A stretch of DNA of 64,000 nucleotides from Macrostomum lignano (taxonomy: Eukaryota): NCBI GenBank assembly GCA_002269645.1, contig NIVC01000186.1, forward strand, positions 558,001 through 622,000. The letters run 5' to 3'. The notes beneath the pieces were generated by a model. That model did not search any database, had not been told where the DNA came from, and worked only from the letters and a program-made list of their open reading frames with translations. This document shows positions 5,901 to 55,117 of this stretch, piece by piece. Every line of letters begins with the position of its first letter. Positions within the stretch are counted from its first letter, which is position 1. The translations under genes and the position numbers were made by a program.

Positions 5901-6552
5901 CGATCTCACTCACCAGTTCCCGATCTCACTCACCAGTTCCCGATCTCACTCACCAGTTCCCGATCCCACTCACCAGTTCCCGATCCCACTCACCAGTTAC
6001 CGATCCCACTCACCAGTTCCCGATCCCACTCACCAGTTCCCGATCCCACTTCAGTAGTTCCCGATCCCACTTTAGTAGTTCCTGATCCCACTCACCAGTT
6101 CCCGATCCCACTTCAGTAGTTCCCGATCCCACTCACCAGTTCCCGATCCCACTTCAGTAGTTCCTGATCCCACTTCAGTAGTTCCTGATCCTACTCACCA
6201 GTTCCCGATCCCACTCACCAGTTCCCGATCCCACTCACCAGTTCCCGATCCCACTTCAGTAGTTCCTGATCCCACTTCAGTAGTTCCTGATCCCACTCAC
6301 CAGTTCCCGATCGTCCAGGACGTCTGCCACTCTGTCGCCCCAGTCCAGAATGCCACCGTCCCTGGCCAGAACAACCCTGGACACGGTGAAGGATGGAGAT
6401 GAGGAGGCTGGCGATGACGAGGCGGGAGAAGACGTGACCGCAGCGGTCAGGTAACGCCTGGCGGCCTTGTCAACCAGACTGCGGATTGTCAGGTCGCCGC
6501 TGCCGCACGGGACAACCAGCTTGGTGTCGCCGAAGCTCACCGTCACCTTCAT
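929..6552 (-). CDS. par-3: Par-3/Bazooka-like polarity protein, 3'-partial; exons 6552-6301, 2099-1813, 1715-929; continues beyond the window start
   Basis: Exon 1 [17 protein letters not shown]...[20 protein letters not shown] matches the Par3 N-terminal PB1-like oligomerisation domain. It joins in phase 0 (CTG|gtgagt ... ttgcag|CTG) to LIAH. Exon 2 ends GA|gtgagt and exon 3 starts ttccag|A (phase 2). Exon 3 carries a PDZ ([14 protein letters not shown]...[30 protein letters not shown]...[11 protein letters not shown]) resembling Par3 PDZ2 and ends GAT|gtaagt. Confidence 0.88.
2240..3095. repeat. (GACA)n/(CACA) compound microsatellite in par-3 intron 1
   Basis: Directly visible. Confidence 0.97.
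4223..6312. repeat. 20/21-bp minisatellite, about 100 units, whose monomer equals the par-3 exon 1/intron 1 junction
   Basis: Unit CCACTCACCAGTTCCCGATC; its reverse complement GATCGGGAACTG|GTGAGTGG is the last 12 exon nt plus first 8 intron nt. Confidence 0.95.
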
Positions 6553-7221
6553 TGCGGCTTAGCGCTGCTGAGCGGTGGCAATTTGGCTAGAAGATTCTGC
6601 TTCTGCCGCGCTTCTGCTGTCTGCTTTTTCTGGGGACTTCTGCAATTGAAAAATTCTATTTTTTAAATTTCCTTTAATTTTTATAACCTTTCTTAAAATT
6701 TAATTAGTGTTGACAATAGGAAAAATTAGGAAAAAATATATTATTATTCCCAGATATTTTGATTTTCAAAATTGACAATAGAGTAATTCTTGCTTCGAAT
6801 ATGACAACTATATAAAAATTTATTTGCAAAAAATTCTGGACAAACAGAAATAAATTTATTAAAACATAATCAAGATATACATGAATTTTAAACAATGGGG
6901 CAAGACATCTTTAAAAAATTATAGCATTATATAATGAAATCTACTGCTAGCATAATACCATTGATAATATTTTTGACTCCTATCTCAGTGAGTCACTATA
7001 ACTAGCTTTATCTTAAGCTATAAAAGTTCTCTAGCTATATTTATATGAACAACCTATTACTTTGTGGCAAAATGGCATTTTTTAATCTTCCTTATATCTC
7101 AAGCAGGCTAGCTAATTTTCTTAAAAATCAATTTAAAAAATTATATATAAACTAAAGCATTGCATGATCTACATGATTGCTCTTTCTAGGATTGGCAATG
7201 ATTCTGTCCACTAAGTTTTGT

Positions 7222-10128: not shown

Positions 10129-14091
<3,963 letters not shown>

Positions 14092-17880: not shown

Positions 17881-20800
17881 CTAGCAGTTGCTGTCGCTGC
17901 TCTCGCTGTCCCACCGACTGTGGGCGCCGAACTTTCCAATTGCGCCTGCAGCCTCGCCCATGCCGCCGCCACCGCCGCCGCCGCCGTTGGGCAGGTGGAC
18001 CTTCATGTGCCGGTTGAGGTTGCCGCTCTGTGAGAACCGCAGCAAGCACAGCTGGCATTGGTAGGGCTTTTCGCCGCTGTGAACCCGCAGGTGCTTGGTC
18101 AGGGTGCTGCTGTCTGAGAAGGCCTTGCCGCACAGCGGACAGGCGTAGGGCCGTTCGCCGCTGTGCGTCCTCATGTGAGTTGTGACTGACGAGCTCTGTG
18201 AGAAGCGCCGGTCGCAGATGCCGCAGCGGAACGGTTTTTCTCCCGAATGGGTGCGCAGGTGGGCGGTGAGGTTGGCGGCCTGTGCGGGGTTTTTGGTGGA
18301 AAATTTATGCATGCATTTAAGCTACTTTCAGTTAAGTAGTAGAATAGCATAATAATGCAAAATTAATATAGTAAGTTGACAATTTTATAATCTCAATGGA
18401 CGCTTTCCTGTCTATGGCTAAAAGTAAGGAACTGAGTCAAAACTCAAGCAAACTAGGCAAGACTAAATTATTTCTTAGAATCCTTACTATTGGACCGGCT
18501 GGAAAGGATAAGGATGAAAAAAGAAACTTTATTTAATAGTTGAGAACTGCCGTTTGGCAGCAGTAGATTCGGTCTTGCCCATAGACATAGACGGAAAAAG
18601 GCAAGCAGGTTTGGCCATAGACAGCGGCACAATAAAAAAGGATGCCAGTAGTTACCAACCTCTTGCGTAGAAATCATCGACTTCCATGCAGTAGAGATCA
18701 TGGAAGCTGGGGTTGGCAAACCATTTATCTTGACTGCGGGCCAGAGGAGGGAAGAGAGGAGATGGAATAGAAAAAAGAGGATAGGAGAGAAGATAAGGGG
18801 GAGGAGGAAAGGGGCAGGAGTAAAGGGGGAGAAGAGGAGAGAAGAAAGAAGAGAGGAGAGAGGAGAGGATAGGAGAAGAGAGGAGAGGAGAAGAGAGGAG
18901 AGGAGAGGAGAGGAGAGGAGAGGAGAGGAGAGGACAGGACAGGAGAGGAGAGGAGAGGACAGGAGAGGAGAGGAGAGGAGAGGAGAGGAGAGGAGAGGAG
19001 AGGAGAGGAGAGGACAGGAGAGGAGAGGAGAGGAGAGGAGAGGAGAGGAGAGGAGAGGAGAGGAGAGGAGAGGAGAGGAGAGGAGAGGAGAGGAGAGGAG
19101 AGGAGAGGACAGGAGAGGAGAGGAGAAGAGAGGAGAGGACAGGAGAGGAGAGGAGAGGAGAGGAAAGGAAAGGAGAGGAGAGGAGGGAAGAGGAGAGGAG
19201 ATTAGAGACTCCTGGTCTAAAGGCAATAAAAGCAATCCTATACATTCCTACCTAGATACAAAGCAGGATTTAACAAAGTTTCAAAATTTCAAATTTTCCT
19301 CACCTGCGAGAAAGTTTTGTCGCAAACGTGACAGCGGAACGGCCGCTCTCCGCTGTGTGTTCTCATGTGCGTCTTGAGCGTTGAGCTTCGCGCATAGGCC
19401 TTGCCGCACACCGGACACACGTTCAGCTTCTCGGACTCCGCCTCTGCACCGCTGCTGCCGCCGCCGCTGCCACCGCCGCCGCCGCCTCCGCTGGTGGCGC
19501 CTGGGAGCTCATGGAAGCTGTTCAGCATTCCTGAGCTGCCGACGCCGCCGCCGAGGGCACCTCCTCCGCCGCTACCATCGAGGCCGTAGCCGCCGCAGTA
19601 GCCGACAAAGTTGAACGCTGACGGCTGCGACTGCTGATGCGGCATCGCGGAAGCGGCTGCGCCGCTGCCACCGACTATTCCCGCGCCTCCTCCCAGGTAG
19701 TCATGGTAGCCGCCTCTGCCACTGTGGTGGTGATGGTGATGGTGATGGTGGTGGCTGTGCCTTGCGGTGGCTGCCGCTGCCGCCGCCGCAGCAGCAGCCG
19801 CAGCAGCCGCAGCCGCCTGTGACGAACTAGGTTGATGCGATTGCTGTTGTTGTTGCTGCTGCAAGTGCGGCTGATTGCTGGGTGCAAGAGGCTGCTGGTG
19901 CTGCAGTTGCTGCAGACTTGAATGTTGCTGCGGCGGCGAATTGATCGCCTGCAACTGGTATTGATGCGGCTGCTGCGGCTGCTGCGGCTGCGGCTGCTGT
20001 CCCAGCTGGTGCTCGGACTCCGGGCACAGTCCCGCAGCGGCAGCGGCGGCGGCAGCAGCGGCAGCAGCGGCTGTGGCCGTATCCTCATACGAGTAATACT
20101 CGTAGGAGTGCCAGGCCTGACCGCTTCCGCCGCCGCCGCCGTCGCCGCCAGCAGCGTAGCGCAGACTCGGCTGAGGCGGATGCTGCATCGCTTCGTGCCT
20201 CGCTGCGACACTGCCGCCGACTCCACTGCTGCCGCTGGCAACTGCTGAGCCACCGCCGTGGCAGGTAATGGCCGCGGTGGCTGCTAAGCCCAGGTTCATG
20301 TTCATGTTCAAGTTGATGTTCATCGCTGCCGGATAGAACCCGCCACCGCCGCTGCCGCCGCCAGGGCCAACGCCAGCGCTGCCGCCACCGTAGTCGTGAT
20401 AGGCGGTTGAAGACATGAGCGTCAGGTCGTGGTCGGCGTGGAATAGCGAAGCAGTCAGCTCGTGCGGGTGATGGCCCGGATGGGGATGATGATGGTGTAG
20501 GCTTGGCTGATGAAGCTGCTGCTGCTGCTGATGCTGGTGCAGGTGATGCTGGGCGAGTCCGAAGTCCGACGACTTCTCTCGTCTGCGCAGGTCAACAGCA
20601 GGCGGCTGGAATGCCGTCTGCGGCCTGCGGGTTCAAAAAAGGCGAATTCCAAGTTTCCAAGCTGGAAACTTCCCAAACTAGAATCTTCTCAAGCTGGAAA
20701 CTTCCCAAACTAGAATCTTCTCAAGCTGGAAACTCCATAAACTGGAAACTTTTCAAACTGGCAACCTCCTAAACTGGAAGCCTCCTAAACTGGAAGCCTC

Positions 20801-34083: not shown

Positions 34084-37000
34084 ATGGCCGAATCGCCAGA
34101 GCAGGACACCAACAGGAGCGGCCAGGCCGGCGAAGAGATCAACCCCGAAAGCTTAGGCGACCCCAGCGTCGGCTTCACCCTTGACGAGCTCCGTCGCGTG
34201 CAGATGACCCGCGGCCGCAAGCCGCCGAAATCGCCGCTCGAGCCGGGCACGCGGCCGCTGCCCTATCCTAGCAACCGTTGCCGGGCGGACCTGTACCGGC
34301 CGGAGGATCTGGCGCATATCGGCCCGCTGGCCAGACAGGTGCTGCCGACGGAGGAAGACACCTGGGAGTCGTTCACTCGCACACTGATGGACACCTGCAA
34401 GTGCCAGACTGACCTGGAGAAGGTGCGCGCCGCTTTCGAATGGGTCGGACAGGCGGACCCAGCCAGGGCCGGGCGGGATGCCGAGGGCAGGAAGAAGGAC
34501 TCGCCGCTGGACATTCTGGCGCGCTGCCGGCAGGAGAAACTTTTCTCAGCGCTCTTCCAGCGAATCATCGCGTGAGTTCGTCCGTCCCTGTCCTGTGTGC
34601 TTATCGGTGTGTGTCTGTCCTGTGTGCTTATCGGTGTGTGTCTGTCCTGTGTGCTTATCGGTGTGTGTCTGTCCTGTGTGCTTATCGGTGTGTCTGTCCT
34701 GTGTGCTTATCGGTGTGTGTCTGTCCTGTGTGCTTATCGGTGTCTGTCTGCCCTGTGTGCTTATCGGTTTGTGTCTGTCCTGTGTGCTTATCGGTGTGTG
34801 TCTGTCCTGTGTGCTTATCGGTGTGTGTCTGTCCTGTGTGCTTATCGGTGTGTGTCTGTCCTGTGTGCTTATCGGTTTGTGTCTGTCCTGTGTGCTTATG
34901 GGTTTGTGTATGTCCTGTGTGCTTATGGGTTTGTGTATGTCCTGTGTGCTTATCGGTGTGTGTCTGTCCTGTGTGCTTATCGGTGTGTGTCTGTCCTGTG
35001 TGCTTATCGGTGTGTGTCTGTCCGTGTCCTGTGTGCTTATCGGTGTGTGTCTGTCCTGTGTGCTTATGGGTTTGTGTCTGTCCTGTGTGCTTATGGGTTT
35101 GTGTCTGTCCTGTGTGCTTATGGGTTTGTGTCTGTCCTGTGTGCTTATCGGTGTGTGTCTGTCCTGTGTGCTTATCGGTGTGTGTCTGTCCTGTGTGCTT
35201 ATGGGTTTGTGTCTGTCCTGTGTGCTTATCGGTTTGTGTCTGTCCTGTGTGCTTATGGGTTTGTGTCTTTCCTGTGTGCTTATGGGTTTGTGTCTGTCCT
35301 GTGTGCTTATGGGTTTGTGTCTGTCCTGTGTGCTTATGGGTTTGTGTCTGTCCTGTGTGCTTATGGGTTTGTGTCTGTCCTGTGTGCTTATGGGTTTGTG
35401 TCTGTCCTGTGTGCTTATGGGTTTGTGTCTGTCCTGTGTGCTTATTGGTGTGTGTCTGTCCTGTGTGCTTATCGGTGTCTGTCTGTCCTGTGTGCTTATG
35501 GGTTTGTGTCTGTCCTGTGTGCTTATCGGTTTGTGTCTGTCCTGTGTGCTTATGGGTTTGTGTCTTTCCTGTGTGCTTATGGGTTTGTGTCTGTCCTGTG
35601 TGCTTATGGGTTTGTGTCTGTCCTGTGTGCTTATCGGTGTGTGTCTGTCCTGTGTGCTTATGGGTTTGTGTCTGTCCGTGTCCTGTGTGCTTATCGGTGT
35701 GTGGCTGTCCTGTGTGCTTATGGGTTTGTGTCTGTCCTGTGTGCTTATCGGTGTCTGTCTGTCCTGTGTGCTTATCGGTGTCTGTCTGTCCTGTGTGCTT
35801 ATCGGTTTGTGTCTGTCCTGTGTGCTTATCGGTTTGTGTCTGTCCGTGTCCTGTGTGCTTATCGGTGTGTGTCTGTCCTGTGTGCTTATGGGTTTGTGTC
35901 TGTCCTGTGTGCTTATCGGTGTGTGTCTGTCCTGTGTGCTTATCGGTTTGTGTCTGTCCTGTGTGCTTATCGGTTTGTGTCTGTCCGTGTCCTGTGTGCT
36001 TATCGGTGTGGGGCTGTCCTGTGTACTTATCGGTTTGTGTCTGTCCCTATCCTGTGTACTTATCGGTTGGTGTCTGTCCCTATCCTGTGTACTTATCGGT
36101 TGGTGTCTGTCCCTATCCTGTGTACTTATCGGTTGGTGTCTGTCCCTATCCTGTGTACTTATCGGTTAGTGTTTGTCAATGCTATTGAAATCGGATTCTA
36201 GCGCACTAAATGCACTGGTGCCACACCAAAGCAACCAACTGCAGCACTGTCTGTCTATCAGGCAAAGCCATAGGATGATAGGCTGTCATCTATTTCTCAG
36301 AGAGCTCTCTGCCGGTGCCACTTTAATATCAAAATGGAAAGCCAATTAATCGCTTTTTTGGAGTCCGTGGAAACAGCTCAGGATCTCCCAAAGCGCAGGA
36401 TATTTACCCTCAACTTTCCCTCTCTCATTTTTGCAACCTGACTTCTCCGATCCCCCAGCTCCTCCGTTCTCAGATCCCGGAAGCTGGCGATGGGGCTGGG
36501 GAAGAAAAATTTTGGCAACTCTCTCCTCCTCCCATCCCGTCTCACTGAATCGCCCATCGTTACCATTGACAACGCCACGTCGCTTTCCAAGAATGCAAAA
36601 CTGAAGAAGAAAAAGAAGAAGTAAGAAGCGAAAGAAAAAAACTAGGCAGGCAGGTGGCCGCCCGTCTCGGGTCGATTATTAACTGGTGGGGGGGGGTTGC
36701 CATCCGGGGTCCAGTTTGAAGTGGGAGAAGGGGCTCAATGACGAACTCCCACCCTCATCTGCTCTCTTTCTCGTTTCATCTTCTGAGTTTGAAGCCTCAT
36801 CCAACTTTGAAAAAAGCAATCTAAGTTGATGATGCCTGCCTGGCTTGGAGTATCGTTAATTAACTGAGCTTCATCGAACAGTTTCAGTAGCACATGGCTT
36901 AACGCAGACCTTTGAAGTTACTAGCAGGCATGGATGTCTGAAAATAAGTTCTGGACAGAGTAACGTAATAGAATCGAAAAACAGCTACATGTGTCGATGA

Positions 37001-40000
37001 ATCCCAAAATTAAATTCCAGAATCCCAAACCGCTCATCTCAGAATCCTAACCCGTAAATCCCCGAACCCCAACCTGTAAATCCCAGAATCTCAACACGAA
37101 AATCCAAGAATCCCAAACCGCTAATCCCAGAATCCCAACCCGCAAACCCCAGACCCCAACCCGTAAATCCCAGAATCCCAATCCGAAAATCCCAGAATCC
37201 CGACCCTTAAATCCCAGAATCCCAAACCGCAAATCCCAGAATCCCAAACAACTAATCCCAGAAACCCAAACAACTAATCCCAGAATCCCAACCCGATAAT
37301 CCCAGAATCCCAACCCGTGAATCCCAGAATCCCAACCCGCAAATCCCAGAATCCCTACCCATGAATCCCAGAATCCCAACCCGTGAATCCCAGAATCCCA
37401 GAATCCCAACCCGTGAATCCCAAAATCCCAACCCGTGAATCTCAGAATCCCAACCCGTGAATTCCAGAATCCCAACCCGCAAACCCCAGAACCCAAACCG
37501 CAAATCCCAGAAACCCAAACAACTAATCCCAGAATCCCAAACCGAAATCCCAGATTCCCAAAACCGCAAATCCCAGAATCCCAACCCGCAAATCCCAGAA
37601 TCCCAACCCACGAACTCCCCGAACCCGGCTCCCGCAGGTACGCAGACGTGGACTACGAGCTGGTTCGCGGCTACAAGAAGGGCACCTCCTATCGAGTCGG
37701 GCAGCGCATCGAGCCGAACCGCGACCGGGGCCTCTGGTTCGCCGTGCTAATCGACGGCGAATGGCGATTCGTCGACGCGCACTGGGGCTGCTGCCACGTG
37801 TCCGGGGAGAACAGCGGCGAGTGGAACAGGATCCAGGAAGACGGCGGAGTGCAGACGTCGACTAGGACTCAGGGCACCGTGGTGTACTCGTGCAACGAGA
37901 CCTACTTCCTCACCGACCCGTGGAAGATGATCTTCAAGCACTTCCCGGAGAGGCCGGAGTGGCAGCTGCTGCCGGAGCCGCTGACCAAGGATCAGTTCGA
38001 GCAGCTGCCCTACCTGTTCCCCGACCTGGTTGAGGCATTCGGCCTGAGACTGCTCAGCCACAAGAAGTCAGTAGCGCTGGTGCCGCACTCCGGACGGTTG
38101 AGCATCGAACTGGAGGAGTCCGGCGAGATTCACGAGTACATGGCGCTGCTGTACATCCACTCCAGCGACACCATCAACTTCCGGCAGAAGCAGATCAAGC
38201 TAGCCAGATTTTTGGCGGTGAAGCGGGCCGGAAATCAACTGCAAATCGAGGTTTACCCGCCAAAGCCGGGAAAGTACCTGTTGGTGCTGCAGGTGAGTGG
38301 CTTATGGTAGTTTCGGACAATGATTCCGGGTAGTTTCGGACAGCGATTCCGGGCAGTTCCGGACAGTGATTCCGGGCAGTTTCGAACAGGGATTCCGGGT
38401 TGTTTCAGAAGTCGGTAGTTTCGGACAGTGATTCCGAGTAGTTTCAGACAGGGATTCCGAGCAGTTTCGGACAGGGATGCTGGGTAGTTTCGGACAGTGA
38501 TTCCGGGTATTTTCGGACAGGGATCTGAGATAGCTTCGGACAGGGATTCTGGGTAGTTTCGGACAGGGATCCGAAATAGCTTTAGACAAGAGTTCGGAGT
38601 AGTTTCAGACAGGAGTTCGAAGTATCAATAGTTTCGGACAGGGGCTCTACGTAGGTTCAAGACGAGGGTTCCGGGTAGTTTCGGACAGATGTTCGGGGTA
38701 GTTTCGGACAGATGTTCGGAGTAGTTTCGGACAGGGATTCTAGGTAGTTCCGGACAGGGGTTTCTGGTAGTTTCGGACAGATATTCCGGGTAATTTGGAC
38801 TTCGGAGTAGTTTTGGACAGGAGTTCGGAGTAGTTTTGGACAGGAGTTCGGAGTAGTTTCGGACAGGAGTTCGGAGTTTCGGACAGGAGTTCGGAGTAGT
38901 TTCGGACAGGGGTTCCGGGCAGATTCAACCGTTGATTCTCCCACTCCGCAGGGCCACAGCGATGGTAGTCCGGCGGCGGGCGGCTCGGCGGCGGCCGGCC
39001 AGATGATGGACCTGGTGCACTACGTGCTGCACTGCCATCGGGCCAGCGACTTCGTCGAGCCAATGCCGGAGAACCAAGCGGACGAGTGGGGCCTCGGCGC
39101 CCGAGCGGAGAAGATCGGCGTGGAAGCGGTGAGCCACCCGGATGCGGAGATCCGGCTGCAGGACGGCGAGCAGACGATCCAGCTGCGGGCTAAGCAGGAC
39201 GAGCTGGAGTACCGCTGCGAGCTGCGCAGCCAGCTGGACACGGAGCCGCTGGCTGACTACGAGCCGCTTGTGTGGCATCAGGACGGCTTCGACCTCGTCC
39301 ATGTGGTGGCGCCCGGCGCCGGCCGGTTCGGCCTGGCGATCCGCGCCAGGCGCCGCTCGGACAAGGAAAGCCAATTCGAGCCGGTGTGCGACTACCTGCT
39401 GGAGTCGGAGGTCGGCGCCGACGGCTCGGAGGACCCGCTGCCGCCGATGCGCCTGATCGGCAGCCTGGCCTGCCCGGACGAGGCCGCCGCGGCCAGGCTG
39501 AAGGCTATGAACGCCAGGCCGGAGCCGAAGTCGCCGTACATCCGGGCCAGCGAGCCGGAGATCTGCCTGGCCTGGCAGCACCGGCCCACTGAGCGGCTGA
39601 GCGCCGAGCTGTACAAATTCGACGCCGGCTCGGCTTCGCTTCGCCGTCTGCCTGATGGCCAGCTGTTCAACCAGGGCGTTGACGTTGGAGACGGCACCGA
39701 GTTTCGGGTGCGCTTTGCCGAGAATGGCTGCCATCTGCTGAGGCTGTTCGCCGACGCCGATGACAGCAGCCGCGAGCTGGTGTACACCTACCTGATCCGC
39801 AGCTGCGCCCGTCTCGACGAACCGCTGGTTGCCTTCCCGACACGCGGACCGGCTTGGCGAGCCCCGGCCTGCCGTCTGGAGAGCGGCGGCCTGGACGGCG
39901 AATTGGCGCCGGGCTGCGCGGCGCCGATCCGACTGCGTGTCGGCGACCTCGGCGAGGTCAACGGTGAAAACGTTGGCGTGTTCGCGGGGGAGACGCCATT

Positions 40001-42411
40001 TCAACTGGATGGCGACTGCTGGACGGGCGACCTGCCGGCCGAGGCGGAGGGCAGTCGGTTTGAGCTTCGCTGCGGCGGCCAGGCGCTGCTGTCCTACCGA
40101 GTGCTCACCGAGGCGGAGCTGCGGCGCCGGGAGGAGGCCGGCGGGAAAGAGGCCGAGGCGCGGAATCGGCGCCGCGACGAACAGAGCGAGCAGCGGGAAG
40201 CCGAGCGTCAGGAGCGCCAGCGCCAGGAGGAGGGCCGGCGCAAGGAGGCCGCAGAGGAGGCCGCAGGCGGCGGCGCCAAGAAGCAGCATCGACCGGGCTC
40301 GGCAGCGTCCTCGAAGTCCAGCGGCGGCTCCAAGCACGACGGTGGAGCGGCGGCGGAAGAAAAATCGTCTTCGTCCAAGTCGGCATCGCCGGTCAAGAAG
40401 TCGGGTCAGTCGTCGCCGTCGAAAGCCCGAGAGTCTCGCTTCCGGTCTAGATCCCGATCCCGATCCCGATCCCACTCTAAATCCCAGTCCAGATCTCGAT
40501 CTCGGTCACGCAGCCGGTCGGAGTCCTCGGCCGACGAAACGGGCCGAAGGTCCGGCAAGGCTGTCGGTGGCCGCAAAGAAGCGGCTGGGGGCGGTGAGTC
40601 ACGTGACGAGCGAAAAGCCAGGAAGCGCGAAGAGCGGGAGAAACGTGAGTTCGATTTTCTATATAAAAAAATAAGTCCACATGTACGTCTGTTAGGCCCT
40701 TATAGCACGCTCCCATCATCCTCTCCGTTCCGATTCAGGCGAACTAAGGAAATACTGCCGCGGCCAACTGCTCGACGCCCTGCGCCGCAAGAAGATGAAG
40801 CCGCTGAAGCGAGCGATGGACGAGTGGGAGGAGAATAAATTCTCTCTGAATGACGATCTGTTTATATTCTCTAAGAGCTACTATCGGATGATGGAGCTGC
40901 GAGAGAGTGAGTGAATTGGGTTGCTAAAGGGTTGAAGCAGATGCCGAATTTGGGACGTATCTTGCACCTCCTTCAGTGGGCGAACGCACATAAAAATATT
41001 TTCGATTCCTCATCAAAATAGAGCTAAAAGACAGCATCCGAGAGGCCAAAGCCAAGCGAGACAAAGAGTACATCGGCAAAGTACTAGAAGAGATCAACAA
41101 TGAGTTCTTTATGGACGAAATTCTGACCGAACTGGACCCAGACGTGCGCCGCGCTTTGGAAGTCTATCGACGATTCGATCGAATCGACAAGATCACCATA
41201 AAGCCGCTGAATCTTGACGAGAAGTCAAAGCTGGAGCTGGCCTCCTATTCCAGCCCGGATAAGAGCGTGCACATCACCTGCATGTCCGTGCTGCTCCTCA
41301 TGGGATACTATGAGAAGCGGACTAGGGTAAGTGCAGTGCATACTAAGATAACGACCACCTAGAGGTATCAATGAAAAAAATAGAACTTTGGGGTTGTCTG
41401 GATGAGCGTGGGATGGAAGGGGCAGGGAATAAAGTGGGTGTTTGGCTGGGTGGAAAATCGGAAAGGCCTAGATGAGCGCGGGAGGGGAGGGGCAAGGAGT
41501 GAGGTGGGTGTTTGGTTGGATGGAAAATCGGAAAGGCCTAGATGAGCGCGGGAGGGGAGGGACAAGGAGTGAGGTGGGTGTTTGGTTGGATGGAAAATCG
41601 GAAAGGCCTAGATGAGCGCGGGAGGGGAGGGGCAAGGAGTGAGGTGGGTGTTTGGTTGGATGGAAAATCGGAAAGGCCTAGATGAGCGCGGGAGGGGAGG
41701 GACAAGGAGTGAGGTGGGTGTTTGGTTGGATGGAAAATCGGAAAGGCCTAGATGATCGCGGGAGGGGAGGGGCAGGGAGTGAGGTGGGTGTTTGGCTGGG
41801 TGAAAATCTGAAAGGCCTGGATGAGCGCGGGATAGGAGGGGCAAGGATTGGGGTGGGTGTTTAGCTGGGTAGAAAATCGGAAAGGAACGAGTAGTAGTGC
41901 TATCGCTATCTCTGTTCCTATTGCAGAAATGGCGCCGTTGTCAGCCCCTGATCCGTGCGCTGAAGGTTGCCGATTTTAACCGGCTAGATCCGGCAAGCGT
42001 TCACCCGGCGATTGCGGCCAGAGCGAGAGAGCTGGTGTCTAATCTGGACGTGAAGGAGGTGGCATTGAAGAGCGCCGCTGCGGCGGCCTTTTTTGACTGG
42101 GTAAGATTCTGAAAATGCAGAATCGGATTCGACAGCAGCGATTAAAGCTTCCGGTTGCAACAATATTATTTATTGCCTTCAACAATAAACACTCGCTTCC
42201 CATCCAGTCACTCAACGCTGTGACAGCGGTTGGCGACCTGAACGACGACAGCGACACGAAGCCGGCCAGCATCAAGAAGCAGAAGAAGCTGTTCAAAGTT
42301 TCGGCCGAGGAGGATGCCGACCTGGACTGGGAGGATAAGGGCAAGCGAGTTCAAACGGCAAATGCTAACTCTGCCGGCGGCAGGGGCCGCGGCCGACCGC
42401 CGAGGAGGTGA
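34084..42411 (+). CDS. Hillarin/KY-like transglutaminase-fold protein (about 1228 aa) with an RS-rich linker and a dynein-MTBD-like C-terminus; exons 34084-34571, 37638-38292, 38952-40644, 40739-40906, 41022-41326, 41927-42100, 42208-42411
   Basis: KY/hillarin motifs [62 protein letters not shown]. All six GT-AG introns are phase-consistent (3687 nt). Confidence 0.85.
34586..36170. repeat. 27-bp minisatellite (GTCTGTCCTGTGTGCTTATCGGTGTGT)n starting just after the intron 1 donor
   Basis: Directly visible. Confidence 0.96.
36995..37615. repeat. About 22-bp minisatellite (AATCCCAGAATCCCAACCCGCA)n ending just before the intron 1 acceptor
   Basis: Directly visible, degenerate. Confidence 0.9.
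38306..38925. repeat. 23-bp minisatellite (GGGTAGTTTCGGACAGTGATTCC)n filling intron 2
   Basis: Directly visible. Confidence 0.92.
41400..41885. repeat. 70-bp minisatellite, about 7 units, filling intron 5
   Basis: GAAAGGCCTA recurs at 41461, 41531, 41601, 41671, 41741. Confidence 0.93.
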
Positions 42412-45294: not shown

Positions 45295-48200
45295 TCACAG
45301 CACTTGCTCGTGCGGCAGTTTCACCCTAGGCGGATAGAACGTGTGGGTGAGCTTATAGTTGAGCAAGTTAGTGATGGAGGACATATAAACATCTGCGTAG
45401 CGGGCCAGACGCCTGCAAAAGAATGAAACGTGATTGTGCGTGCGAAATATTGAGCCAAAGTAAATGTTAGTCATGCCGGAGATGTCCTCTAGCAGGTTGC
45501 GCCGCTCCTCCAGCCACAGTTCGAGCAGGCCGCGACAGTCAGGGTGGCTGTCGTACACCTGAGGTGCGGTTTGGGGAACAGGTGAATTGATTCTGGCACA
45601 GGTGAATTGATTCTGGCACAGGTAAATTGATTCTGGCACAGGTGAATTGATTCTGGCACAGGTAAATTGATTCTGGCACAGGTGAATTGATTCTGGCACA
45701 GGTAAATTGATTCTGGCACAGGTGAATTGATTCTGGCACAGGTAAATTGATTCTGGCACAGGTGAATTGATTCTTGCACAGGTGAATTGATTCTGGCACA
45801 GGTAAATGGATTCTGGCACAGGTAATCAACCGAGGCAGGAACAGGTGATGAACAGAGACAGGAGCAAGTAATAAACGGAGACAGGAGCAGGTAATCAACC
45901 GAGACAGGAGCAGGTAATCAACCGAGACAGGAGCAGGTAATCAACCAAAACCGGAACAGGTAATAAACCGAGACAGGAGCAGGTAATAAACAAAAGAAGC
46001 CAATATAAACAAGCAATTCGCACCTGCATCTCTGAGATCAGCCTCTCCAGCTGATCCAGCCAATAGACATTCTCCCTGTATCGATCCGACGACATGGAAC
46101 GCAGCTCCTGGGCCAGTTCCGGTATGACAGCCCCGGTGCGCCAGCCGTGCTGCAACGAAGCGTCCAGTAAGTCGGACGAGACGTGATCGCCGCAGAACAG
46201 GGTCCTCTCGCCCTTCCACTGGGTGAGCTGGTGCAGGGCGGTCACGTTGCCCTCGCTATAGACGGAGTGCGGCTCCAGCGACTCAACAGAGTGCCATGAG
46301 GGCTGGCCGCCGATCGTGCACAAGTGACGGAAAGGCCTGGGACAAAAGTTAAGTTTATAGTGCCTATTACTGTACTGACAGTAGCAGGGCATGCTGCTAA
46401 ATTTGGTCTGTTTGAAACTTGGGATTTTTCATAATAAATATTTTCCATTGAATCCACAAGAGAATCGCCTTTCTGTCTTGTTTTTTTTCCCGAGAGAATC
46501 TCTCTTCCTTCCCATTCAATCCCCCAAGTGAATCGCTCTTCCCGTTCTATCCCCCAAGTGAATCGCTCTTCCCGTTCTATCCCCCAAGTGAATCAATCGC
46601 TCTTCCCGTTCTATCCCCCAAGTGAATAGCTCTTCCCGTTCTATCCCCCAAGTGAATCAATCGCTCTTCCCGTTCTATCCCCCAAGTGAATAGCTCTTTC
46701 CGTTCTATCCCCCAAGTGAATAGCTCTTCCCGTTCTATCCCCCAAGTGAATCGCTCTTCCCGTTCTATCCCCCAAGTGAATCAATCGCTCTTCCCGTTCT
46801 ATCCCCCAAGTGAATCAATCGCTCTTCCCGTTCTATCCCCCAAGTGAATAGCTCTTTCCGTTCTATCCCCCAAGTGAATAGCTCTTCCCGTTCTATCCCC
46901 CAAGTGAATAGCTCTTCCCGTTCTATCCCCCAAGTGAATAGCTCTTCCCGTTCTATCCCCCAAGTGAATAGCTCTTCCCGTTCTATCCCCCAAGTGAATC
47001 GCTCTTCCCGTTCTATCCCCCAAGTGAATCGCTCTTCCCGTTCTATCCCCCAAGTGAATCGCTCTTCCCGTTCTATCCCCCAAGTGAATAGCTCTTTCCG
47101 TTCTATCCCCCAAGTGAATAGCTCTTCCCGTTCTATCCCCCAAGAGAATCACTCTTCCCGTTCTATCCCCCAAGTGAATAGCTCTTCCCGTTCTATCCCC
47201 CAAGAGAATCACTCTTCCCGTTCTATCCCCCAAGTGAATAGCTCTTCCCGTTCTATCCCCAAGAGAATCACTCTTCCCGTTCTATCCCAAGTGAAATGAA
47301 CTCACTTAGACGTGCTAGTAAAGAAAAAAGGCTTCCTGGCTTGTACGATGACTAAATCGAAATATTGACGCCAATCTTTGCCAAGCAAATAGGTGAGGCC
47401 GCCGTCTCTGCAATTTTTTTCAAAAACAAAATTAGATTCTTAGCTTTCTACTATTAAAGCTACGATAAGTAGCATACGAAGCACATTAGTAGCTAGCTGG
47501 CTAGATGACAGCAGCTAACTTACATGAAGTTATAGTTGCTATTGGACACTAGGAACACTTTCTTGCCGTTGCGCTGCAGCCGGGATAGCAGCGGCTCCAG
47601 GCGCGAGTCCCGACGCAGGTAGCGCTCAGGATCGCGCACGATCTCGTCGTGAAGCTTGCCGGACCGGTGCAGCTGCTCCATGCTGGCGCGCACGTCCGCG
47701 TGCAGCTGCATCGGGTCGAATTGGATGTTGCGCATCTCCAGGTACTGGAGAGGGAGACAGAGATGGGGACGGGTGGGAACGTTTGGCTATTTTTAGTAAA
47801 TGCCAAATGGATAGAACAGTATACGGAAGCAAAGCGAGAATAGAAGACAAGCGCAAAGACCAAGAAGACAAGAACAAAGATTGAGAAGACAAGAACAAAG
47901 ATTGAGAAGACAAGAACAAAGACAAGAAAAAAGATTGAGAAGAGAAGAACAAAGACAAGAAAAAAGATTGAGAAGACAAGAACAAAGATTGAGAAGACAA
48001 GAACAAAGACAAGAAAAGACTAAGACGACAAACACTAGAAGAAAAATTATACAAAAAATTAAAATTAAAAGACAAGAAACAAAAACAGGACAAAATTTCC
48101 CAAAGAATGAAAAGCAACAAAAGAAGAGTATCTCTTACCTCGATAAGATAAGCCAGCAGGTTCATCTCGGGTGCAGCAAAGGAGTCGTACAGCTGCACCA

Positions 48201-50783
48201 TGTACTCGCTCTGTAGGGGGGGGGGGTGATTTTTTACAGCGGGACTGTAAAATTTGGTCATGATTCTCGGGATCTATTCGTGATGATTCACGGGATCAAT
48301 TCGGGATGATTCTCGGGACCAATTCGAGGTAATTTCTGGGATCTATTCGGGATGATTCACGGGATCAATTCGGGATGATTCTCGGGACCAATTCGGGGTG
48401 ATTTCTGGGATCAATTCGGGATGATTCTCGGGATCAATTCAAGATGATTGTCGGGATCAATTCGAGATTCTTGGTATCTATTCAAGATGATTCTCGGGAT
48501 CAATTCGAGATTTTCGGGATCTATTCGGGTCGATTATTGGGATCATTCAAGATAATTCTCGGGATCAATTCGAGATGATTCTTGGGATCAATTCGGGATG
48601 ATTCTTGGGATCAATTCGGGATGATTCTCTGAATGAATTCGAGATGATTCTCGGTATCAATTCGGGATGATTCTTGGGATCAATTCGGGATGATTCTTGG
48701 GATCAATTCGGGATGATTCTCGGGATCCATTCAGGATGATTCTCGGGATCAACTCGAGATGACTCTCGGGATCAATTCGGGATGCTTCTTGGGATTAATT
48801 AAGGATGATTCTCGGGATTAAATGGGGATGATTATCGGGATTAATTTGGGATGATTCTCGGGATCAGTTCCGGATGATTCTCGGGATCCATTCGGGATGA
48901 TTTTCGGGATCAATTCGGCATGATTCTCTGAATGAATTCGAGATTATTCTTGGAATCAATTCGACATGATTCTCGGGATCAACTCGAGATGACTCTCGGG
49001 ATCAATTTGAGATGATTCTTGGGATTAATTCGGGATGATTCTCGGGATTAATTCGGGATGATTCTCGGGATCAATTTGAGATGATTCTCGAGTTTAATTT
49101 GGGTTGATTCTCGGGATCAACTCGGGATGATTCTCGGGATTAATTTGGGATGATTCTCGGGTTTAATTTCGGTTGATTCTCGGGATCAATTCGGGTTGAT
49201 TCTCGGGATTAATTTGGGTTGATTCTCAGGATCAACTCGGGATGATTCTCGGGTTTAATTTGGGTTGATTCTCAGGATCAACTCGGGATGATTCTCGGGA
49301 TCAATTCGGGACACTTTTTAACTAAAAGACTGGGATAATAGTCCCATCATACAAATTCAAACCGACTCACATCGCCAAATTCTTTCAGATAGCTGTCAGG
49401 AATCCGAGTGCCCTTGTAGATTTTGGCAACCTGATCCGAGCTCAGCGGCCTAAGGCCTCGATAGACAGTTCCCGGCTGAATATTGTGCACAGCGTCAGTT
49501 TTCAAGAACAGGCCCCGTTTGATGTCGAAATGCATACCGCGAGCGGCGAAGCTCGGGTTATAGAGAAAGTGCATAATGTTGCGCGGATAGTTGTATCGCT
49601 GTACGAGGTGACGCTTAGCGGATTCGAACATGAAAGCGGCGACATTGTCGTTGTAGTTGGCCAGAGTGAAGTCGTAGTCAAAGCCGTACACATCGATGTC
49701 CTGCAGTGACATCTCCGTGTTGGTGAAGATCAGGGTGGTCCAATTGCGATAGTCTGTACGGGGTCGCTTGGATCTGTAAAATATATTTAGCATTATTTCT
49801 AAGAAAGGCGCTAGATAGCGAAATCTTAAATATATGATATGCTATAATCTTACTTTCCGAAATCTCAAAAATGGGATATTCACTCCCAATTCCCAAAAGT
49901 AACTTTCCAGTCCCGATTCCATAAGATCTAAAAAATATGGAATTCCATTCCTAATTTCCTAAGATTTAAAAATGGGATATTCCAGTCCTAATTTCCTAAG
50001 ATTTAACAATGGGGTATTCCACTCCCGGTTTCCTACGAGCGTAAAATATCAAATGGGATATACCAGTCCCGATTCCAAAAAATCACAAAATTTGGGATAT
50101 TCCAATCCCGATTCCCTAAAATCCTAAAAAATGGGATATTCGAGTCTCAATGACCAAAAAATCCCAACAATAAAATATTCCAGTCCCGATTTTTAAAATC
50201 CCAAAAATGGGACATACCACTCCCGATTCTTTAAAATCCCCAAAACGGAATATTCCAGTCCCGATTCCCTAAAATCCTTAAAAGGGGATATTTTAATAAA
50301 GATTCCCAAAGATCCCAATAATGGGATATTCCAGTCTCGAATTCCTAAAATCCCAAAAATGGGATATTCCACTTCTGGTTCCCAAAATCCAAAACGTTGT
50401 TTTTCAGTCTCAGCAATTCCAAAACTGGGATACATCAATAATTATCCACAGAATCTCGAGAATGAGGTATCTAAATTCACCCAAGGACAGTAAAAGATTA
50501 AGAGTAAACCTCACCTAAATTGAGCATACTGTTTAGCAGCCGAATACTTTTCCTGCATCAGTTCATACAGAGACATCTGCACTTCAATTGTGCGAGCGGG
50601 CGGCGGCGGCAAGGATTCGCCAGCTGAAGACGCCGACGGCGAGGATCTGGGTATGCGCAGGCCGGCCGGAGCGGCGGGCCTGGCTTTGGGCACGAAGTCG
50701 CTGGATAGTTGACGACGCCAACTCGCCAGCCGACTGAGCAGCCGGCTTGAGCTCGACATAGGCACAGAGCCGGAGCGATGCAT
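45295..50783 (-). CDS. NT5DC2/NT5DC3-like HAD-superfamily 5'-nucleotidase (about 547 aa); exons 50783-50515, 49773-49371, 48210-48139, 47744-47524, 47407-47306, 46336-46024, 45558-45295
   Basis: HAD motif [73 protein letters not shown]. Phase-consistent GT-AG introns (1644 nt). Arg/Ser-rich N-terminus may be a mitochondrial presequence. Confidence 0.92.
45579..45822. repeat. 20-bp minisatellite (CAGGTGAATTGATTCTGGCA)n, NT5DC intron 6
   Basis: Directly visible. Confidence 0.94.
45820..45990. repeat. 23-bp minisatellite (CAGGAGCAGGTAATCAACCGAGA)n, NT5DC intron 6
   Basis: Directly visible. Confidence 0.85.
46520..47295. repeat. 30-bp minisatellite (TTCTATCCCCCAAGTGAATAGCTCTTCCCG)n, NT5DC intron 5
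   Basis: Directly visible. Confidence 0.95.
47860..48020. repeat. 21-bp minisatellite (GAAGACAAGAACAAAGATTGA)n, NT5DC intron 3
   Basis: Directly visible. Confidence 0.85.
48258..49312. repeat. 23-bp minisatellite (GGGATGATTCTCGGGATCAATTC)n, NT5DC intron 2
   Basis: Directly visible. Confidence 0.94.
49860..50430. repeat. Degenerate ~35-bp tandem repeat (AAAATGGGATATTCCAGTCCCGATTCC...), NT5DC intron 1
   Basis: Recurrent GGGATATTCC.....CCGATT cores. Confidence 0.8.
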
Positions 50784-51807: not shown

Positions 51808-52723
51808 AAATTAAAAAAACTCTCGACTGACTACTAATGGAATTCTATAATTCGCATCTGAAGCGGAAACTAATCTTTATTGTTTAATCACATGGGGGGG
51901 TTAATTTGGCCTAGTAAAGTAACTCAAAAAAGGAAAAGTGCAACCAACAAGATGGATTTTTATGACATAGCGTGTATCATGACACGTCAACTTTAAATTA
52001 CGTATCCGTATCCTGATTATTGAATTTGGACCCTAAATACCAAATTGCCACCCTAAGCCCTTTGAATTATCTACATATTTCTGCAACTTGAGTGGGTCAG
52101 AGAGGTTCAGCAATGTAAAAGATAGAGTAAGAGATGTTGGTATTTCGCTCGTATTTGATTGCTCGTATCTCGTAAAAGATAGAGTAAGAGATGTTGGTAT
52201 TTCGCTCGTATTTGATTTCAAAAAAATTTGCCAGCTAGCATCCCAGTTTTAAAATTTGGCATCTTGAGTTCGAACCCAGGATGGAAGATGGCACTGTGAT
52301 TCTGACACTTTAAAGATCTAACCAATAAGCTGTAAGCTATCATAGGTTCATCTTTATAGGCACACGTCAGCATCCACTCCAAATGTCGTAATGTTTATAT
52401 TATAAAACTCCATGGGCTAGTGCTTGAACTCCGTGAATTACATGCCGTTTTTGTCAGAGATTTGACCATAGAAAATACGAAAATGCTCCAAATAAAATGA
52501 ATAAACGAAGTTCTATATTTAAATCTAACTGATAAACAACAGTGCAGAGCACTACTGACAAAAATAGCTTCAGCCTTTGCCCAATTCGGTCATAGACAAA
52601 GCTCAGAGAATCAATTTTTTAAACTGATTAGAAGCACAAGAGTAATTTTGCAGCGGGAGGCAAAGATTTTTAAATCAACAAATTACTGGACAGCATGCGT
52701 ATGCCGCGACATTGCTAGAAACA

Positions 52724-55117
52724 ATGGACACCGACAATCGGACGGGCCTGTCCGAGCATCGGAGCAAGCACAGGCGTAGACAAGCCTATCAGGACTACGA
52801 TAGACGACTAGCGGCCAAGGCCAAGGCACTGAAAGACAAACGCGAAGTGGTAAATAAGATCGCGTCAATTGATATCTGGGCCACTGAGCGGCTTTATAAA
52901 AAGTGGAAGCGTCAAGCGATAGCCGGGGCGCGGCACAAATCAGCGCACAGTCCAGACCGGGATCCGTCAATGTTTAACTACAGCGCCAAGCAGCAGCCGG
53001 CATGTGAAATGCATCGAAATCGGGACTTCGGCAGCGCTAGTAGAAAATATTTTGCTGCGAGCATGGCCGAACAGGTTAATAATAAAAGAATTCGTACAGC
53101 CACAATGGTGGACTTCTTCGACAGCAGTCTAGCCGGCGATGCGCCTTTGCCGTCCCACTTGCACAGGTGTCAAAATCGGCGCAGAGCTCACAGTCGGCCC
53201 AACGAATCGGGCCTGGAACAGGAGCATTTAAAGCATCGAAAGCACCAGCACCATCACGAGCATCGGCATAGCCGGCGGAACCTAAGCCTCTCTAACACGA
53301 TGCAACAGCACTCGCGTTGTCAGTGGGCAAAGGTAAAATGTCAGCAGCAGCAGGAGCAGCAGCAGCAGCAGAAACAAAAGAAAGTCGACTGCCACTCAGA
53401 GAGGACAAGTGAAATCGATTGGCCAGATAGTTGGCCCTCAATCTGGGGCTCCACTGCGCCTCAGTGCGCGCAAAGAGGTAGCAGCAACAGCGACTGTCTG
53501 CAAGAAGCGGCCGCGGCAGCCGACAGTCGCAAACCAGAACAGCGAAGCAAGGAAAAAAAGAATCTGCGACGACGCCAACAATCTGGGAATCTGGTTGACG
53601 CTGTAGCTGGCAAAGATACCTTTGAAGCCCTACTGACACTTAATATCAATGAAAAAGCCGGCGAAAAACAAGTGCAACAACAGCTGGCTGGCCGAGAAGA
53701 AAACGGAGCTGGCAGTCAAAATCTGACAATGCCTCATCTCACGAATTCGCAAATTCAGGAATCGGAAAACCAGGGATCCACAGTGTTGAATAAGGCAAAT
53801 TTGGAGGAAACAGTTCGGCCGCAAGTCAATGTAGCCAGTTATTGCAACAGTTTGGGCAAGAAAGCGCTTGGAAACGAGTTCAACGTGGTACGACTTATCA
53901 AGCCGGAAAAATGCCGATACGAGCAAGCTACTAATCTGCCAAAACCGGTCGTGTGGCTAATAGCCGATGAGCCGTCAGCATCGGAACAGAAGGTTCGCTC
54001 GGACGATGACAGAGCCAACTTTAACAATGAAGTGCAGTTTAGAGAAGCAACCGACAATGGACAGGCTTTCAATACCGCAAACAATTTAAAAACCGTAACC
54101 AGCAGCACCATCTCTTTTCAACAGCAGCAGGGGTTTGGGCTGCGCACCTTCACCTCGATCACCTGTCACAACAGCGCGGATTCTAAAACGCTAAAGATGC
54201 TATCGTCAGCAACAAACGAGCGCGAGGAGGAAGAAGAAGAGATACAGAGCCATATTAGTAGTCCGATTGTCCTAGCTCAAATATCCTACATCAAATCGGC
54301 CGTTTACTGGAGAACAGGCGCCATCAAACCGGAGATTAGGATGCATTCGAACAGAGAATTCAACAATTTATTAGATAGCGACGACGCTAGCGAAGACGGC
54401 GATGGCATTATTTACACTGCTCAAGAGGTTGGCGAGTCGAAATTCATGGAGCCACAGACCGGCATAGTTACTAGGCTAGTGCAGGTGGAAGTGCTTAAAG
54501 CGGCGCAGCTAATTAAGTCCAAAGGCTTCGCTGGCCTGGTTGGAACTCGGCCTAGCGAGCTGGACGCTGATATGCAGTCGACAACGGACACGTTGGCCTC
54601 AACCACAATAGATGACGACGAAGACTTCGAAATGGGGGACGATTTTAATATTGAAGGCGACAAGGATTCGCTTGGAGAACTAGACGACCTGGACCTGGAC
54701 GAGGAAGAGTACGAAGAGGCGCCAATCAGGTCAAGTAAGGTCAAGCCTAGCGCGGACACAGCGTCTTCATCGACATCATCGTCTAGCGACGAGACAGACA
54801 GAAGGCAATCACAGCGGGGGCGGCGGCTTGGACGGAGGAGCAGCAGCGCCGCTAGCAAAGGCAACTACAACAGGCAGAAAAGACTGCCGAAAGCGGCAGC
54901 GGCCGCGCCAGAAGCTAAGGCGCTCCCAATGACGCAGTGTCCAACAACGCGTCACCGAATAGAATGCTTTACTACTCGACCAGGCCAGGTGAAGTGCTAT
55001 ATGACGGCTAGGCATCCAGTCAAGTGTCGCGTTCAGGATGGTCGCATTGTGTGCAAGGCGACTGTGAGAGCCGAGTCAAGCAACCTGCCATATCCATGCA
55101 ATGCAGCCTGGCAATGA
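52724..55117 (+). CDS. Intronless orphan protein, about 797 aa, largely low-complexity/disordered with a short Cys-containing C-terminal segment
   Basis: 2.4-kb stop-free non-repetitive ORF; first ATG at 52724 (ACAATGG); no family recognised. Confidence 0.72.
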   Translation: MDTDNRTGLSEHRSKHRRRQAYQDYDRRLAAKAKALKDKREVVNKIASIDIWATERLYKKWKRQAIAGARHKSAHSPDRDPSMFNYSAKQQPACEMHRNRDFGSASRKYFAASMAEQVNNKRIRTATMVDFFDSSLAGDAPLPSHLHRCQNRRRAHSRPNESGLEQEHLKHRKHQHHHEHRHSRRNLSLSNTMQQHSRCQWAKVKCQQQQEQQQQQKQKKVDCHSERTSEIDWPDSWPSIWGSTAPQCAQRGSSNSDCLQEAAAAADSRKPEQRSKEKKNLRRRQQSGNLVDAVAGKDTFEALLTLNINEKAGEKQVQQQLAGREENGAGSQNLTMPHLTNSQIQESENQGSTVLNKANLEETVRPQVNVASYCNSLGKKALGNEFNVVRLIKPEKCRYEQATNLPKPVVWLIADEPSASEQKVRSDDDRANFNNEVQFREATDNGQAFNTANNLKTVTSSTISFQQQQGFGLRTFTSITCHNSADSKTLKMLSSATNEREEEEEEIQSHISSPIVLAQISYIKSAVYWRTGAIKPEIRMHSNREFNNLLDSDDASEDGDGIIYTAQEVGESKFMEPQTGIVTRLVQVEVLKAAQLIKSKGFAGLVGTRPSELDADMQSTTDTLASTTIDDDEDFEMGDDFNIEGDKDSLGELDDLDLDEEEYEEAPIRSSKVKPSADTASSSTSSSSDETDRRQSQRGRRLGRRSSSAASKGNYNRQKRLPKAAAAAPEAKALPMTQCPTTRHRIECFTTRPGQVKCYMTARHPVKCRVQDGRIVCKATVRAESSNLPYPCNAAWQ

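Follow-up and report, generated by a model that had tools for sequence, protein, structure and literature searches.

To our knowledge, the microtubule-binding domain (MTBD) of dynein has generally been treated as a part of the motor only, with an affinity that is set by the sliding of the stalk helices. Motor-free versions have been engineered as chimeras with seryl-tRNA synthetase (PDB 3ERR, 3J1T), in which the MTBD is carried on a foreign helical base, and these show that the domain can still be a folded microtubule-binding unit in this form. The proteins of the KY/hillarin/LTD-1 family, in which Ig-like_KY repeats (PF23265) follow a transglutaminase-like region, have been linked in the literature to muscle Z-discs, axon hillocks, and cytokinesis, and we know of no such C-terminal module in vertebrate KY. 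Here a 64,000-nucleotide stretch of the genome of the flatworm Macrostomum lignano (assembly GCA_002269645.1, contig NIVC01000186.1, positions 558,001 to 622,000 of the forward strand), referred to below as the window, is described. It contains a gene for a 1228-aa KY/hillarin-like protein, the C-terminal module of which is almost certainly homologous to the MTBD of dynein heavy chains.

Relationship of the module to dynein

The sequence from the window is unconvincing when taken singly, and it is the family-level evidence that settles the homology. In a comparison with the PDB, the best match of the window sequence is the MTBD of the axonemal dynein DNAH10 (residues 3194-3266), at an E-value of only 0.14. 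An earlier note on this DNA, made by reading the sequence, had pointed out the likeness to the dynein stalk tip and had suggested PF12777, the Pfam family 'MT' in which the MTBD is the central part, as a check; this family is not matched by the C-terminal 291 aa, even at E<=10, nor by the full protein. A word-indexed homologue search with the C-terminus returned one match only, and a profile of two sequences (A1) recovered from the PDB only the unrelated CheA (E=0.29), being too shallow.

A profile of 50 family modules (A4), of which the first row is the window sequence, was then searched against all PDB sequences. Among the matches listed there are only dynein heavy chains, each aligned at the MTBD, and the best of these is the MTBD of yeast dynein (6kio/6kjn, E=8.5e-12), which covers positions 8-120 of the 124 in the profile and therewith helices H1-H6. 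Scanned singly, 19 of the 50 modules match PF12777, the best at 8.4e-7, and any further Pfam family is matched by a single module at most. There is also one sub-threshold full-length Pfam match, which spans model positions 97-211 of 344 in PF12777, representing the end of CC1 and the MTBD without CC2. The likeness proposed in the earlier note is thus borne out, at the level of the family, by the profile and by the structural matches of the family models described below. One of the PDB chains that align as a dynein heavy chain, in the same way as DNAH10, is the 4583-aa 9fqr_Hl, labelled 'Radial spoke head protein 9 homolog', which looks like a naming slip in the PDB entry.

The module shares with the dynein MTBD the signature E-[IL]-[RK]-S-[YLM]-x-x-P-P...L-L-G...W...S-x-A-A-x-x-[FYL]-x-x-W and a basic surface. 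The relatives are more dynein-like in this respect than the window copy, having ...T-I-A-E-I-R-S-Y-x-x-P-P-x-x-V-H-x-V-M-x-A-T-x-L-L-L-G...W...S-A-G-A-A-x-F-[YF]-x-W. The two prolines that the earlier note had read into this pattern are not both present in the window, where the second is replaced and the sequence is P-D, and the Arg of H1 is Ala. The family differs from dynein in a 3-residue basic insertion after H3 (GKTGKESLKRR).

Predicted fold

AlphaFold models were considered for P0001, a 250-aa M. lignano paralogue that is 67% identical to the C-terminus of the window protein, and for P0018, a typical member of the family. The model of P0001 has an overall predicted local distance difference test score (pLDDT) of 87, with values above 96 over residues 90-230, and shows the expected succession of helices. 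When it was compared with the PDB using Foldseek, which the earlier note had also proposed, 21 of the best 22 matches were dynein stalk or MTBD entries, the match at rank 9 being a radial-spoke entry. The model of P0018 (pLDDT 96.4, predicted template modelling score 0.87) likewise has almost only dynein stalk/MTBD structures as its best matches. It superposes on the microtubule-bound mouse dynein-1 MTBD (6rzb_C) with a root-mean-square deviation (rmsd) of 3.0 Å over 136 columns and a template modelling score of 0.67, and on the yeast MTBD with 3.3 Å in the high-affinity state and 3.7 Å in the low-affinity state.

The C-terminal module comprises ~180 residues, in which a CC1-like helix is followed by the six-helix bundle H1-H6, as in dynein, and by a CC2 stub, the helix beyond H6 running only ~10 residues in the models. 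Upstream of the module there are three or four shorter helices in both models, in place of the long stalk. Where the dynein MTBD is inserted between AAA4 and AAA5 of a motor of ~4000 aa, the module lies in a 1228-aa protein without an AAA+ ring, and the longest match in the family has at most 2303 aa. There is no CC2 return helix, and most of the family proteins stop 5-40 aa past H6. The lack of both the motor context and CC2 leaves no route for a nucleotide-driven change of register. The engineered chimeras, chains of which (3ERR/3J1T type) are among the sequence and structure matches, are similar in that the motor is absent and the helical base is foreign; they differ in being artificial and in retaining CC1 as well as CC2, at a register that was chosen, whereas the natural module has the CC2 stub and its own upstream helices.

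In the subfamily to which the window protein belongs, the MTBD is followed by a tail motif (aa 1179-1209), KPAS-x3-QKK-x-LF...DLDWED in the window, for which the consensus is [KQ]-P-A-x3-Q-[KR]-[KRx]-x-[ILF]-[LF] with an acidic ...DLDWED. Some of the carriers conserve this motif (P0002-P0004, P0006, P0007, P0010, P0014, P0015, P0020, P0023, P0030, P0036, and P0037). The tail is modelled with very high confidence (pLDDT 93-98), and therefore presumably packs against the helical base, where it may be a cap that replaces CC2.

The gene and its KY-type scaffold

The gene model was made by splicing exons from the forward strand, both by eye and by script, and the splice phases were checked (Table 1). 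There are no in-frame stops in the 3687-nt coding sequence (CDS), all six introns have GT..AG boundaries and compatible phases, and the product matches the deposited M. lignano protein BOX15_Mlig018951g2 (P0165) with 100% identity along its entire length. This match means that the KY-type scaffold, the charged RS-rich linker, and the MTBD form a single annotated protein, and that exons 4-7 lie on the same protein as the KY exons, as the earlier note had supposed. A fusion arising as an artefact of the gene model was considered and rejected, since the deposited 1228-aa protein matches exactly. The deposited entry is annotated with PF23265 only.

The peptides quoted in the earlier note are indeed encoded on the forward strand where it had placed them, a 26-aa peptide forming the end of exon 5 and KWRRCQPLI...AAAAAFFDW filling exon 6. 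The last residue of its '...FFDWV', in contrast, is a read-through into the intron (gta); after splicing FFDW is followed by SLNAV, and the paralogue P0001 has FFDWTLNVV. The junction between exons 5 and 6 agrees with the P0001 and P0165 proteins.

Three Ig-like_KY stretches (PF23265, E=4.8e-25) are the sole Pfam match in the whole 1228-aa protein, which therefore has no AAA+ ring, in keeping with what had been noted from the sequence. There is no match to the transglutaminase-like core PF01841 in the window protein at E<=0.1, the region being too degenerate for Pfam; the N-terminal region does align with this core in paralogues and orthologues matching PF01841. At the positions that we take to be those of the canonical Cys-His-Asp triad, the Cys and His are substituted and the Asp is kept, both in the window protein and in seven aligned MTBD-bearing relatives, which sets these proteins apart from the KY/hillarin/LTD-1 family and accords with the inactive enzyme that had been suggested. 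On this alignment the transglutaminase-like region is a predicted pseudo-enzyme scaffold, and the protein a member of the KY/hillarin family, to which the source names of its relatives ('hillarin-like', 'HIL-like', 'kyphoscoliosis peptidase', 'ltd-1-like') also point.

The scaffold is followed by a low-complexity linker of 179 aa (aa 767-945; S35 R34 E27 A22), so that the RS run and charged linker of the earlier note are real. It shares exon 3 with the last Ig-like domain, and the connection between scaffold and linker is therefore independent of any splice. The linker is probably disordered, and it could be phosphorylated.

Conservation of the tubulin contacts

The residues of the yeast MTBD that form salt bridges with tubulin are K3117, E3122, and R3124 in H1, R3152 and R3159 in H3, and R3201 in H6, of which E3122 pairs with R402 of alpha-tubulin (Nishida et al., PMC7042235). 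These six positions were mapped onto 97 family modules. The equivalent of E3122 is Glu in 96 of the 97, including the window protein, where it is residue 1073, and the Trp that opens H3 is likewise found in 96. The R3124 equivalent is basic in 82%, with Ala in the window and Thr in P0001. The remaining positions are less well kept: R3152 is basic in 45% and R3159 in 19%, both being Arg in the window protein, at aa 1106 and 1113, while K3117 is basic in 14% at the column itself and in 48% at the next (Glu in the window, with Lys at the next position), and R3201 in 9% at the column and in 53% at the preceding one (Leu in the window, followed by Lys). Throughout the family there is hardly any variation in the structural Pro, Gly, Trp, and Ser residues. 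The module is basic, with a net charge of +6 and an isoelectric point (pI) of 9.6 in the window, compared with a family median pI of 9.4 and 9.0 for the yeast MTBD. From these residues, the family is likely to bind microtubules, with somewhat less certainty in the case of the divergent copy in the window.

Distribution and protein architectures

An exhaustive HMMER search (E<=1e-3), started from a small profile of Macrostomum sequences, found the module in at least 106 non-dynein cluster representatives, none of which is of dynein length, and in which it is nearly always C-terminal. The statement in the earlier note that the MTBD is normally found only in dynein is therefore too strong. The KY-type carriers come from Platyhelminthes, with several M. 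lignano paralogues, and from gastropods, bivalves, annelids including a leech, a brachiopod, and amphioxus, and the same order of transglutaminase-like region, Ig-like_KY, and module is seen in many RefSeq models. In the amphioxus KY protein P0098 there is a CARD domain directly before the module.

The module is also found at the end of proteins that are not of the KY type. These are CLCA proteins with a VWA domain in amphioxus (P0085 and P0093, Branchiostoma), a VWA protein of the tunicate Styela clava (P0065), and an EGF-repeat protein of the hemichordate Saccoglossus kowalevskii (P0090). In these carriers a single strong hydrophobic helix, predicted to be transmembrane, lies between the extracellular-type domains and the module, and a signal-like segment is present at the N-terminus of both CLCA proteins, while the KY carriers have neither a signal nor a transmembrane helix. 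On this predicted topology, the CLCA, VWA, and EGF carriers would be direct tethers between membrane proteins and microtubules.

The names given to the paralogues vary. UniRef has automatically named one of those in M. lignano 'MT domain-containing protein'. The MTBD-only model P0001 is named 'MAGE domain-containing protein', and the 960-aa paralogue P0166, which is 44% identical, 'Protein kinase domain-containing protein'; these two names probably stem, as artefacts, from older gene models that were merged or fragmented. A literature search of incomplete coverage turned up no account of an MTBD in KY/hillarin proteins or anywhere else outside dynein. It is tentatively suggested that a dynein-derived MTBD became a mobile, motor-less microtubule-docking module in the invertebrate bilaterians, capping KY/hillarin scaffolds and the tails of single-pass membrane proteins, and that these proteins represent an undescribed class of microtubule-associated proteins.

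Proposed function and alternative explanations

The C-terminal ~180 residues of the window protein, a true relative of the MTBD, rather more probably than not serve as a passive, nucleotide-ungated microtubule anchor on a KY/hillarin-like pseudo-transglutaminase. The module would dock on tubulin through H1, H3, and H6, as in dynein, with an affinity that would be constitutive, the register of its helices being set by the helical bundle that comes before it and, in the subfamily of the window protein, also by the conserved C-terminal tail folding back. The linker would connect the anchor to the transglutaminase-like and Ig-like scaffold, which presumably binds other partners, so that cargo or another cytoskeletal system would be tethered to microtubules. 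The location of the module, at the extreme C-terminus of cytosolic scaffolds or of predicted receptor tails, fits a cytoskeletal docking role.

Two other explanations are improbable. The resemblance to dynein might be due to no more than chance, or to composition in a helical, coiled-coil-like sequence, as the E-value of 0.14 and the absence of a Pfam match for the window sequence, and the CheA match of the 2-sequence profile, might suggest. Such an artefact is effectively refuted by the 50-sequence profile, whose listed matches are confined to the MTBD within heavy chains of 4000 aa, by the 19 members that reach PF12777 independently, and by the two high-confidence models that retrieve almost only dynein stalk/MTBD structures. 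It is also improbable that exons 4-7 are made additionally, or only, as a separate short transcript, giving a stand-alone MTBD protein of ~250 aa that is not always fused to KY. The closest paralogue, P0001, is a UniRef model of this length that begins at a Met equivalent to that in the ...RAMDEW of the window, in exon 4, and there are many short database entries for the module; short entries are, however, typical of fragmentary gene models. The deposited protein for the locus is the complete 1228-aa fusion, introns 3 and 4 measure 94 and 115 bp and have compatible phases, and full-length proteins with the transglutaminase-like region, Ig-like_KY, and module are annotated in many species.

The main rival to the microtubule anchor accepts the fold and supposes its re-use to bind something else, for which septins, a further filament system, or a signalling partner might be candidates, the protein not being associated with microtubules. 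Several observations weigh against the anchor. The models represent a paralogue and a family member rather than the exact sequence of the window, which itself gives no match to PF12777. Basic residues are found at the equivalents of K3117, R3152, R3159, and R3201 in no more than about half of the members (9-45%), which counts in favour of re-use, and the window copy is divergent, having lost the R3124 equivalent and the second Pro of the H1-H2 'PP', to Ala and Asp, and having the Arg of H6 displaced. The affinity of the dynein MTBD depends on the register of CC1 and CC2, whereas the module has only a stub of CC2. Re-use would also account for the features of the family that are absent from dynein, the insertion after H3 and, in the subset, the PA-x3-Q[KR] tail, and Drosophila Hillarin reportedly interacts with the septin Pnut. 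Against it, the residues that the family conserves most are the Glu of H1, which is a contact to tubulin, the Pro that follows H1, and the Trp that starts H3; the overall basic charge is retained; and the module fits the structure of a microtubule-bound dynein MTBD at 3.0 Å rmsd. Re-use is regarded as rather unlikely, though it is the most serious of the alternatives, and the passive microtubule anchor is preferred.

Other features of the window

Introns 1, 2, and 5 of the KY-MTBD gene are largely filled by satellite-like tandem repeats (34588-36046, 37011-37609, 38306-38926, and the repeat of intron 5), with units of 27 bp (53 copies), 22/44/66 bp, 23 bp (27 copies), and 70 bp (6.9 copies). 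These create long spurious open reading frames (ORFs), such as a 582-aa 'CVCPVCLSV' ORF at 34440-36188, and there are similar blocks in other places, including 2.2-3.3 kb, 13.2-13.8 kb, and 44.4-45.2 kb. Exons of several other genes were recognized (Table 1). With the exon for the Par3/HAL N-terminal domain, the coding part of a Par-3/Bazooka polarity gene probably begins, and the 5'-nucleotidase family gene lies directly downstream of the KY-MTBD gene and on the other strand.

Table 1. Location of the features of the KY-MTBD gene and of other features in the 64,000-nucleotide window.
Feature	Position	Strand	Content or evidence
KY/hillarin-like gene, whole CDS	34084..42411	+	7 exons, 1228 aa
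Exon 1	34084..34571	+	N-terminus and first half of degenerate transglutaminase-like region; paralogue alignment
Exon 2	37638..38292	+	Second half of transglutaminase-like region and first Ig-like_KY; Pfam PF23265, tblastn with P0004
Exon 3	38952..40644	+	More Ig-like_KY domains, then 179-aa low-complexity linker; Pfam PF23265
E/R/Q-rich stretch of linker	40107-40265	+	Exon 3
RS run of linker	40434-40529	+	Exon 3
Exon 4	40739..40906	+	Start of helical region before MTBD; splice phases, helices H10-42 in AlphaFold model of paralogue
Exon 5	41022..41326	+	Helical hairpins, CC1-like helix (from ~41171), MTBD H1 and H2
MTBD-like module	41171-42237	+	Spliced from exons 5-7
MTBD helix H1 (10 aa)	41219-41248	+	Invariant Glu codon 41234-41236
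MTBD helix H2	41261-41305	+	In exon 5
Intron 5	41327..41926	+	600 bp, GT..AG, non-coding, separates H2 from H3
Tandem repeat	41401-41885		70-bp unit, 6.9 copies, inside intron 5
Exon 6	41927..42100	+	MTBD H3 (near-invariant Trp), H4, H5, most of H6
Exon 7	42208..42411	+	CC2-like stub (10 aa, to 42237), tail motif 42259-42351, RG-rich end, TGA stop
Polyadenylation signal AATAAA	42443..42448	+	32 nt beyond stop codon; read directly
Par3/HAL N-terminal oligomerisation domain exon	6280-6558	-	PF12053, E=7e-20
NHL-repeat exons	10978-11307, 12754-13008	-	PF01436
C2H2 zinc-finger gene exons, Q/H-rich low-complexity regions	17884-18321, 19292-20632	-	
Cytosolic 5'-nucleotidase family exons	47523-47786, 49350-49841	-	PF05761, E=7e-37 and 1e-19
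Uninterrupted 823-aa ORF	52646-55114	+	No Pfam match at E<=0.001

Implications

RNA interference and transgenesis are established in M. lignano, which makes the hypothesis of a passive microtubule anchor directly testable in this flatworm. If it is true, a new fold joins the non-motor microtubule-binding domains, and the family would show, as an experiment of nature, which affinity state is intrinsic to the MTBD when it is freed from control by the stalk register. The membrane-protein variants would, in the same case, be direct links from receptors to microtubules. For the poorly understood KY/hillarin family, the presence of the module suggests a function.

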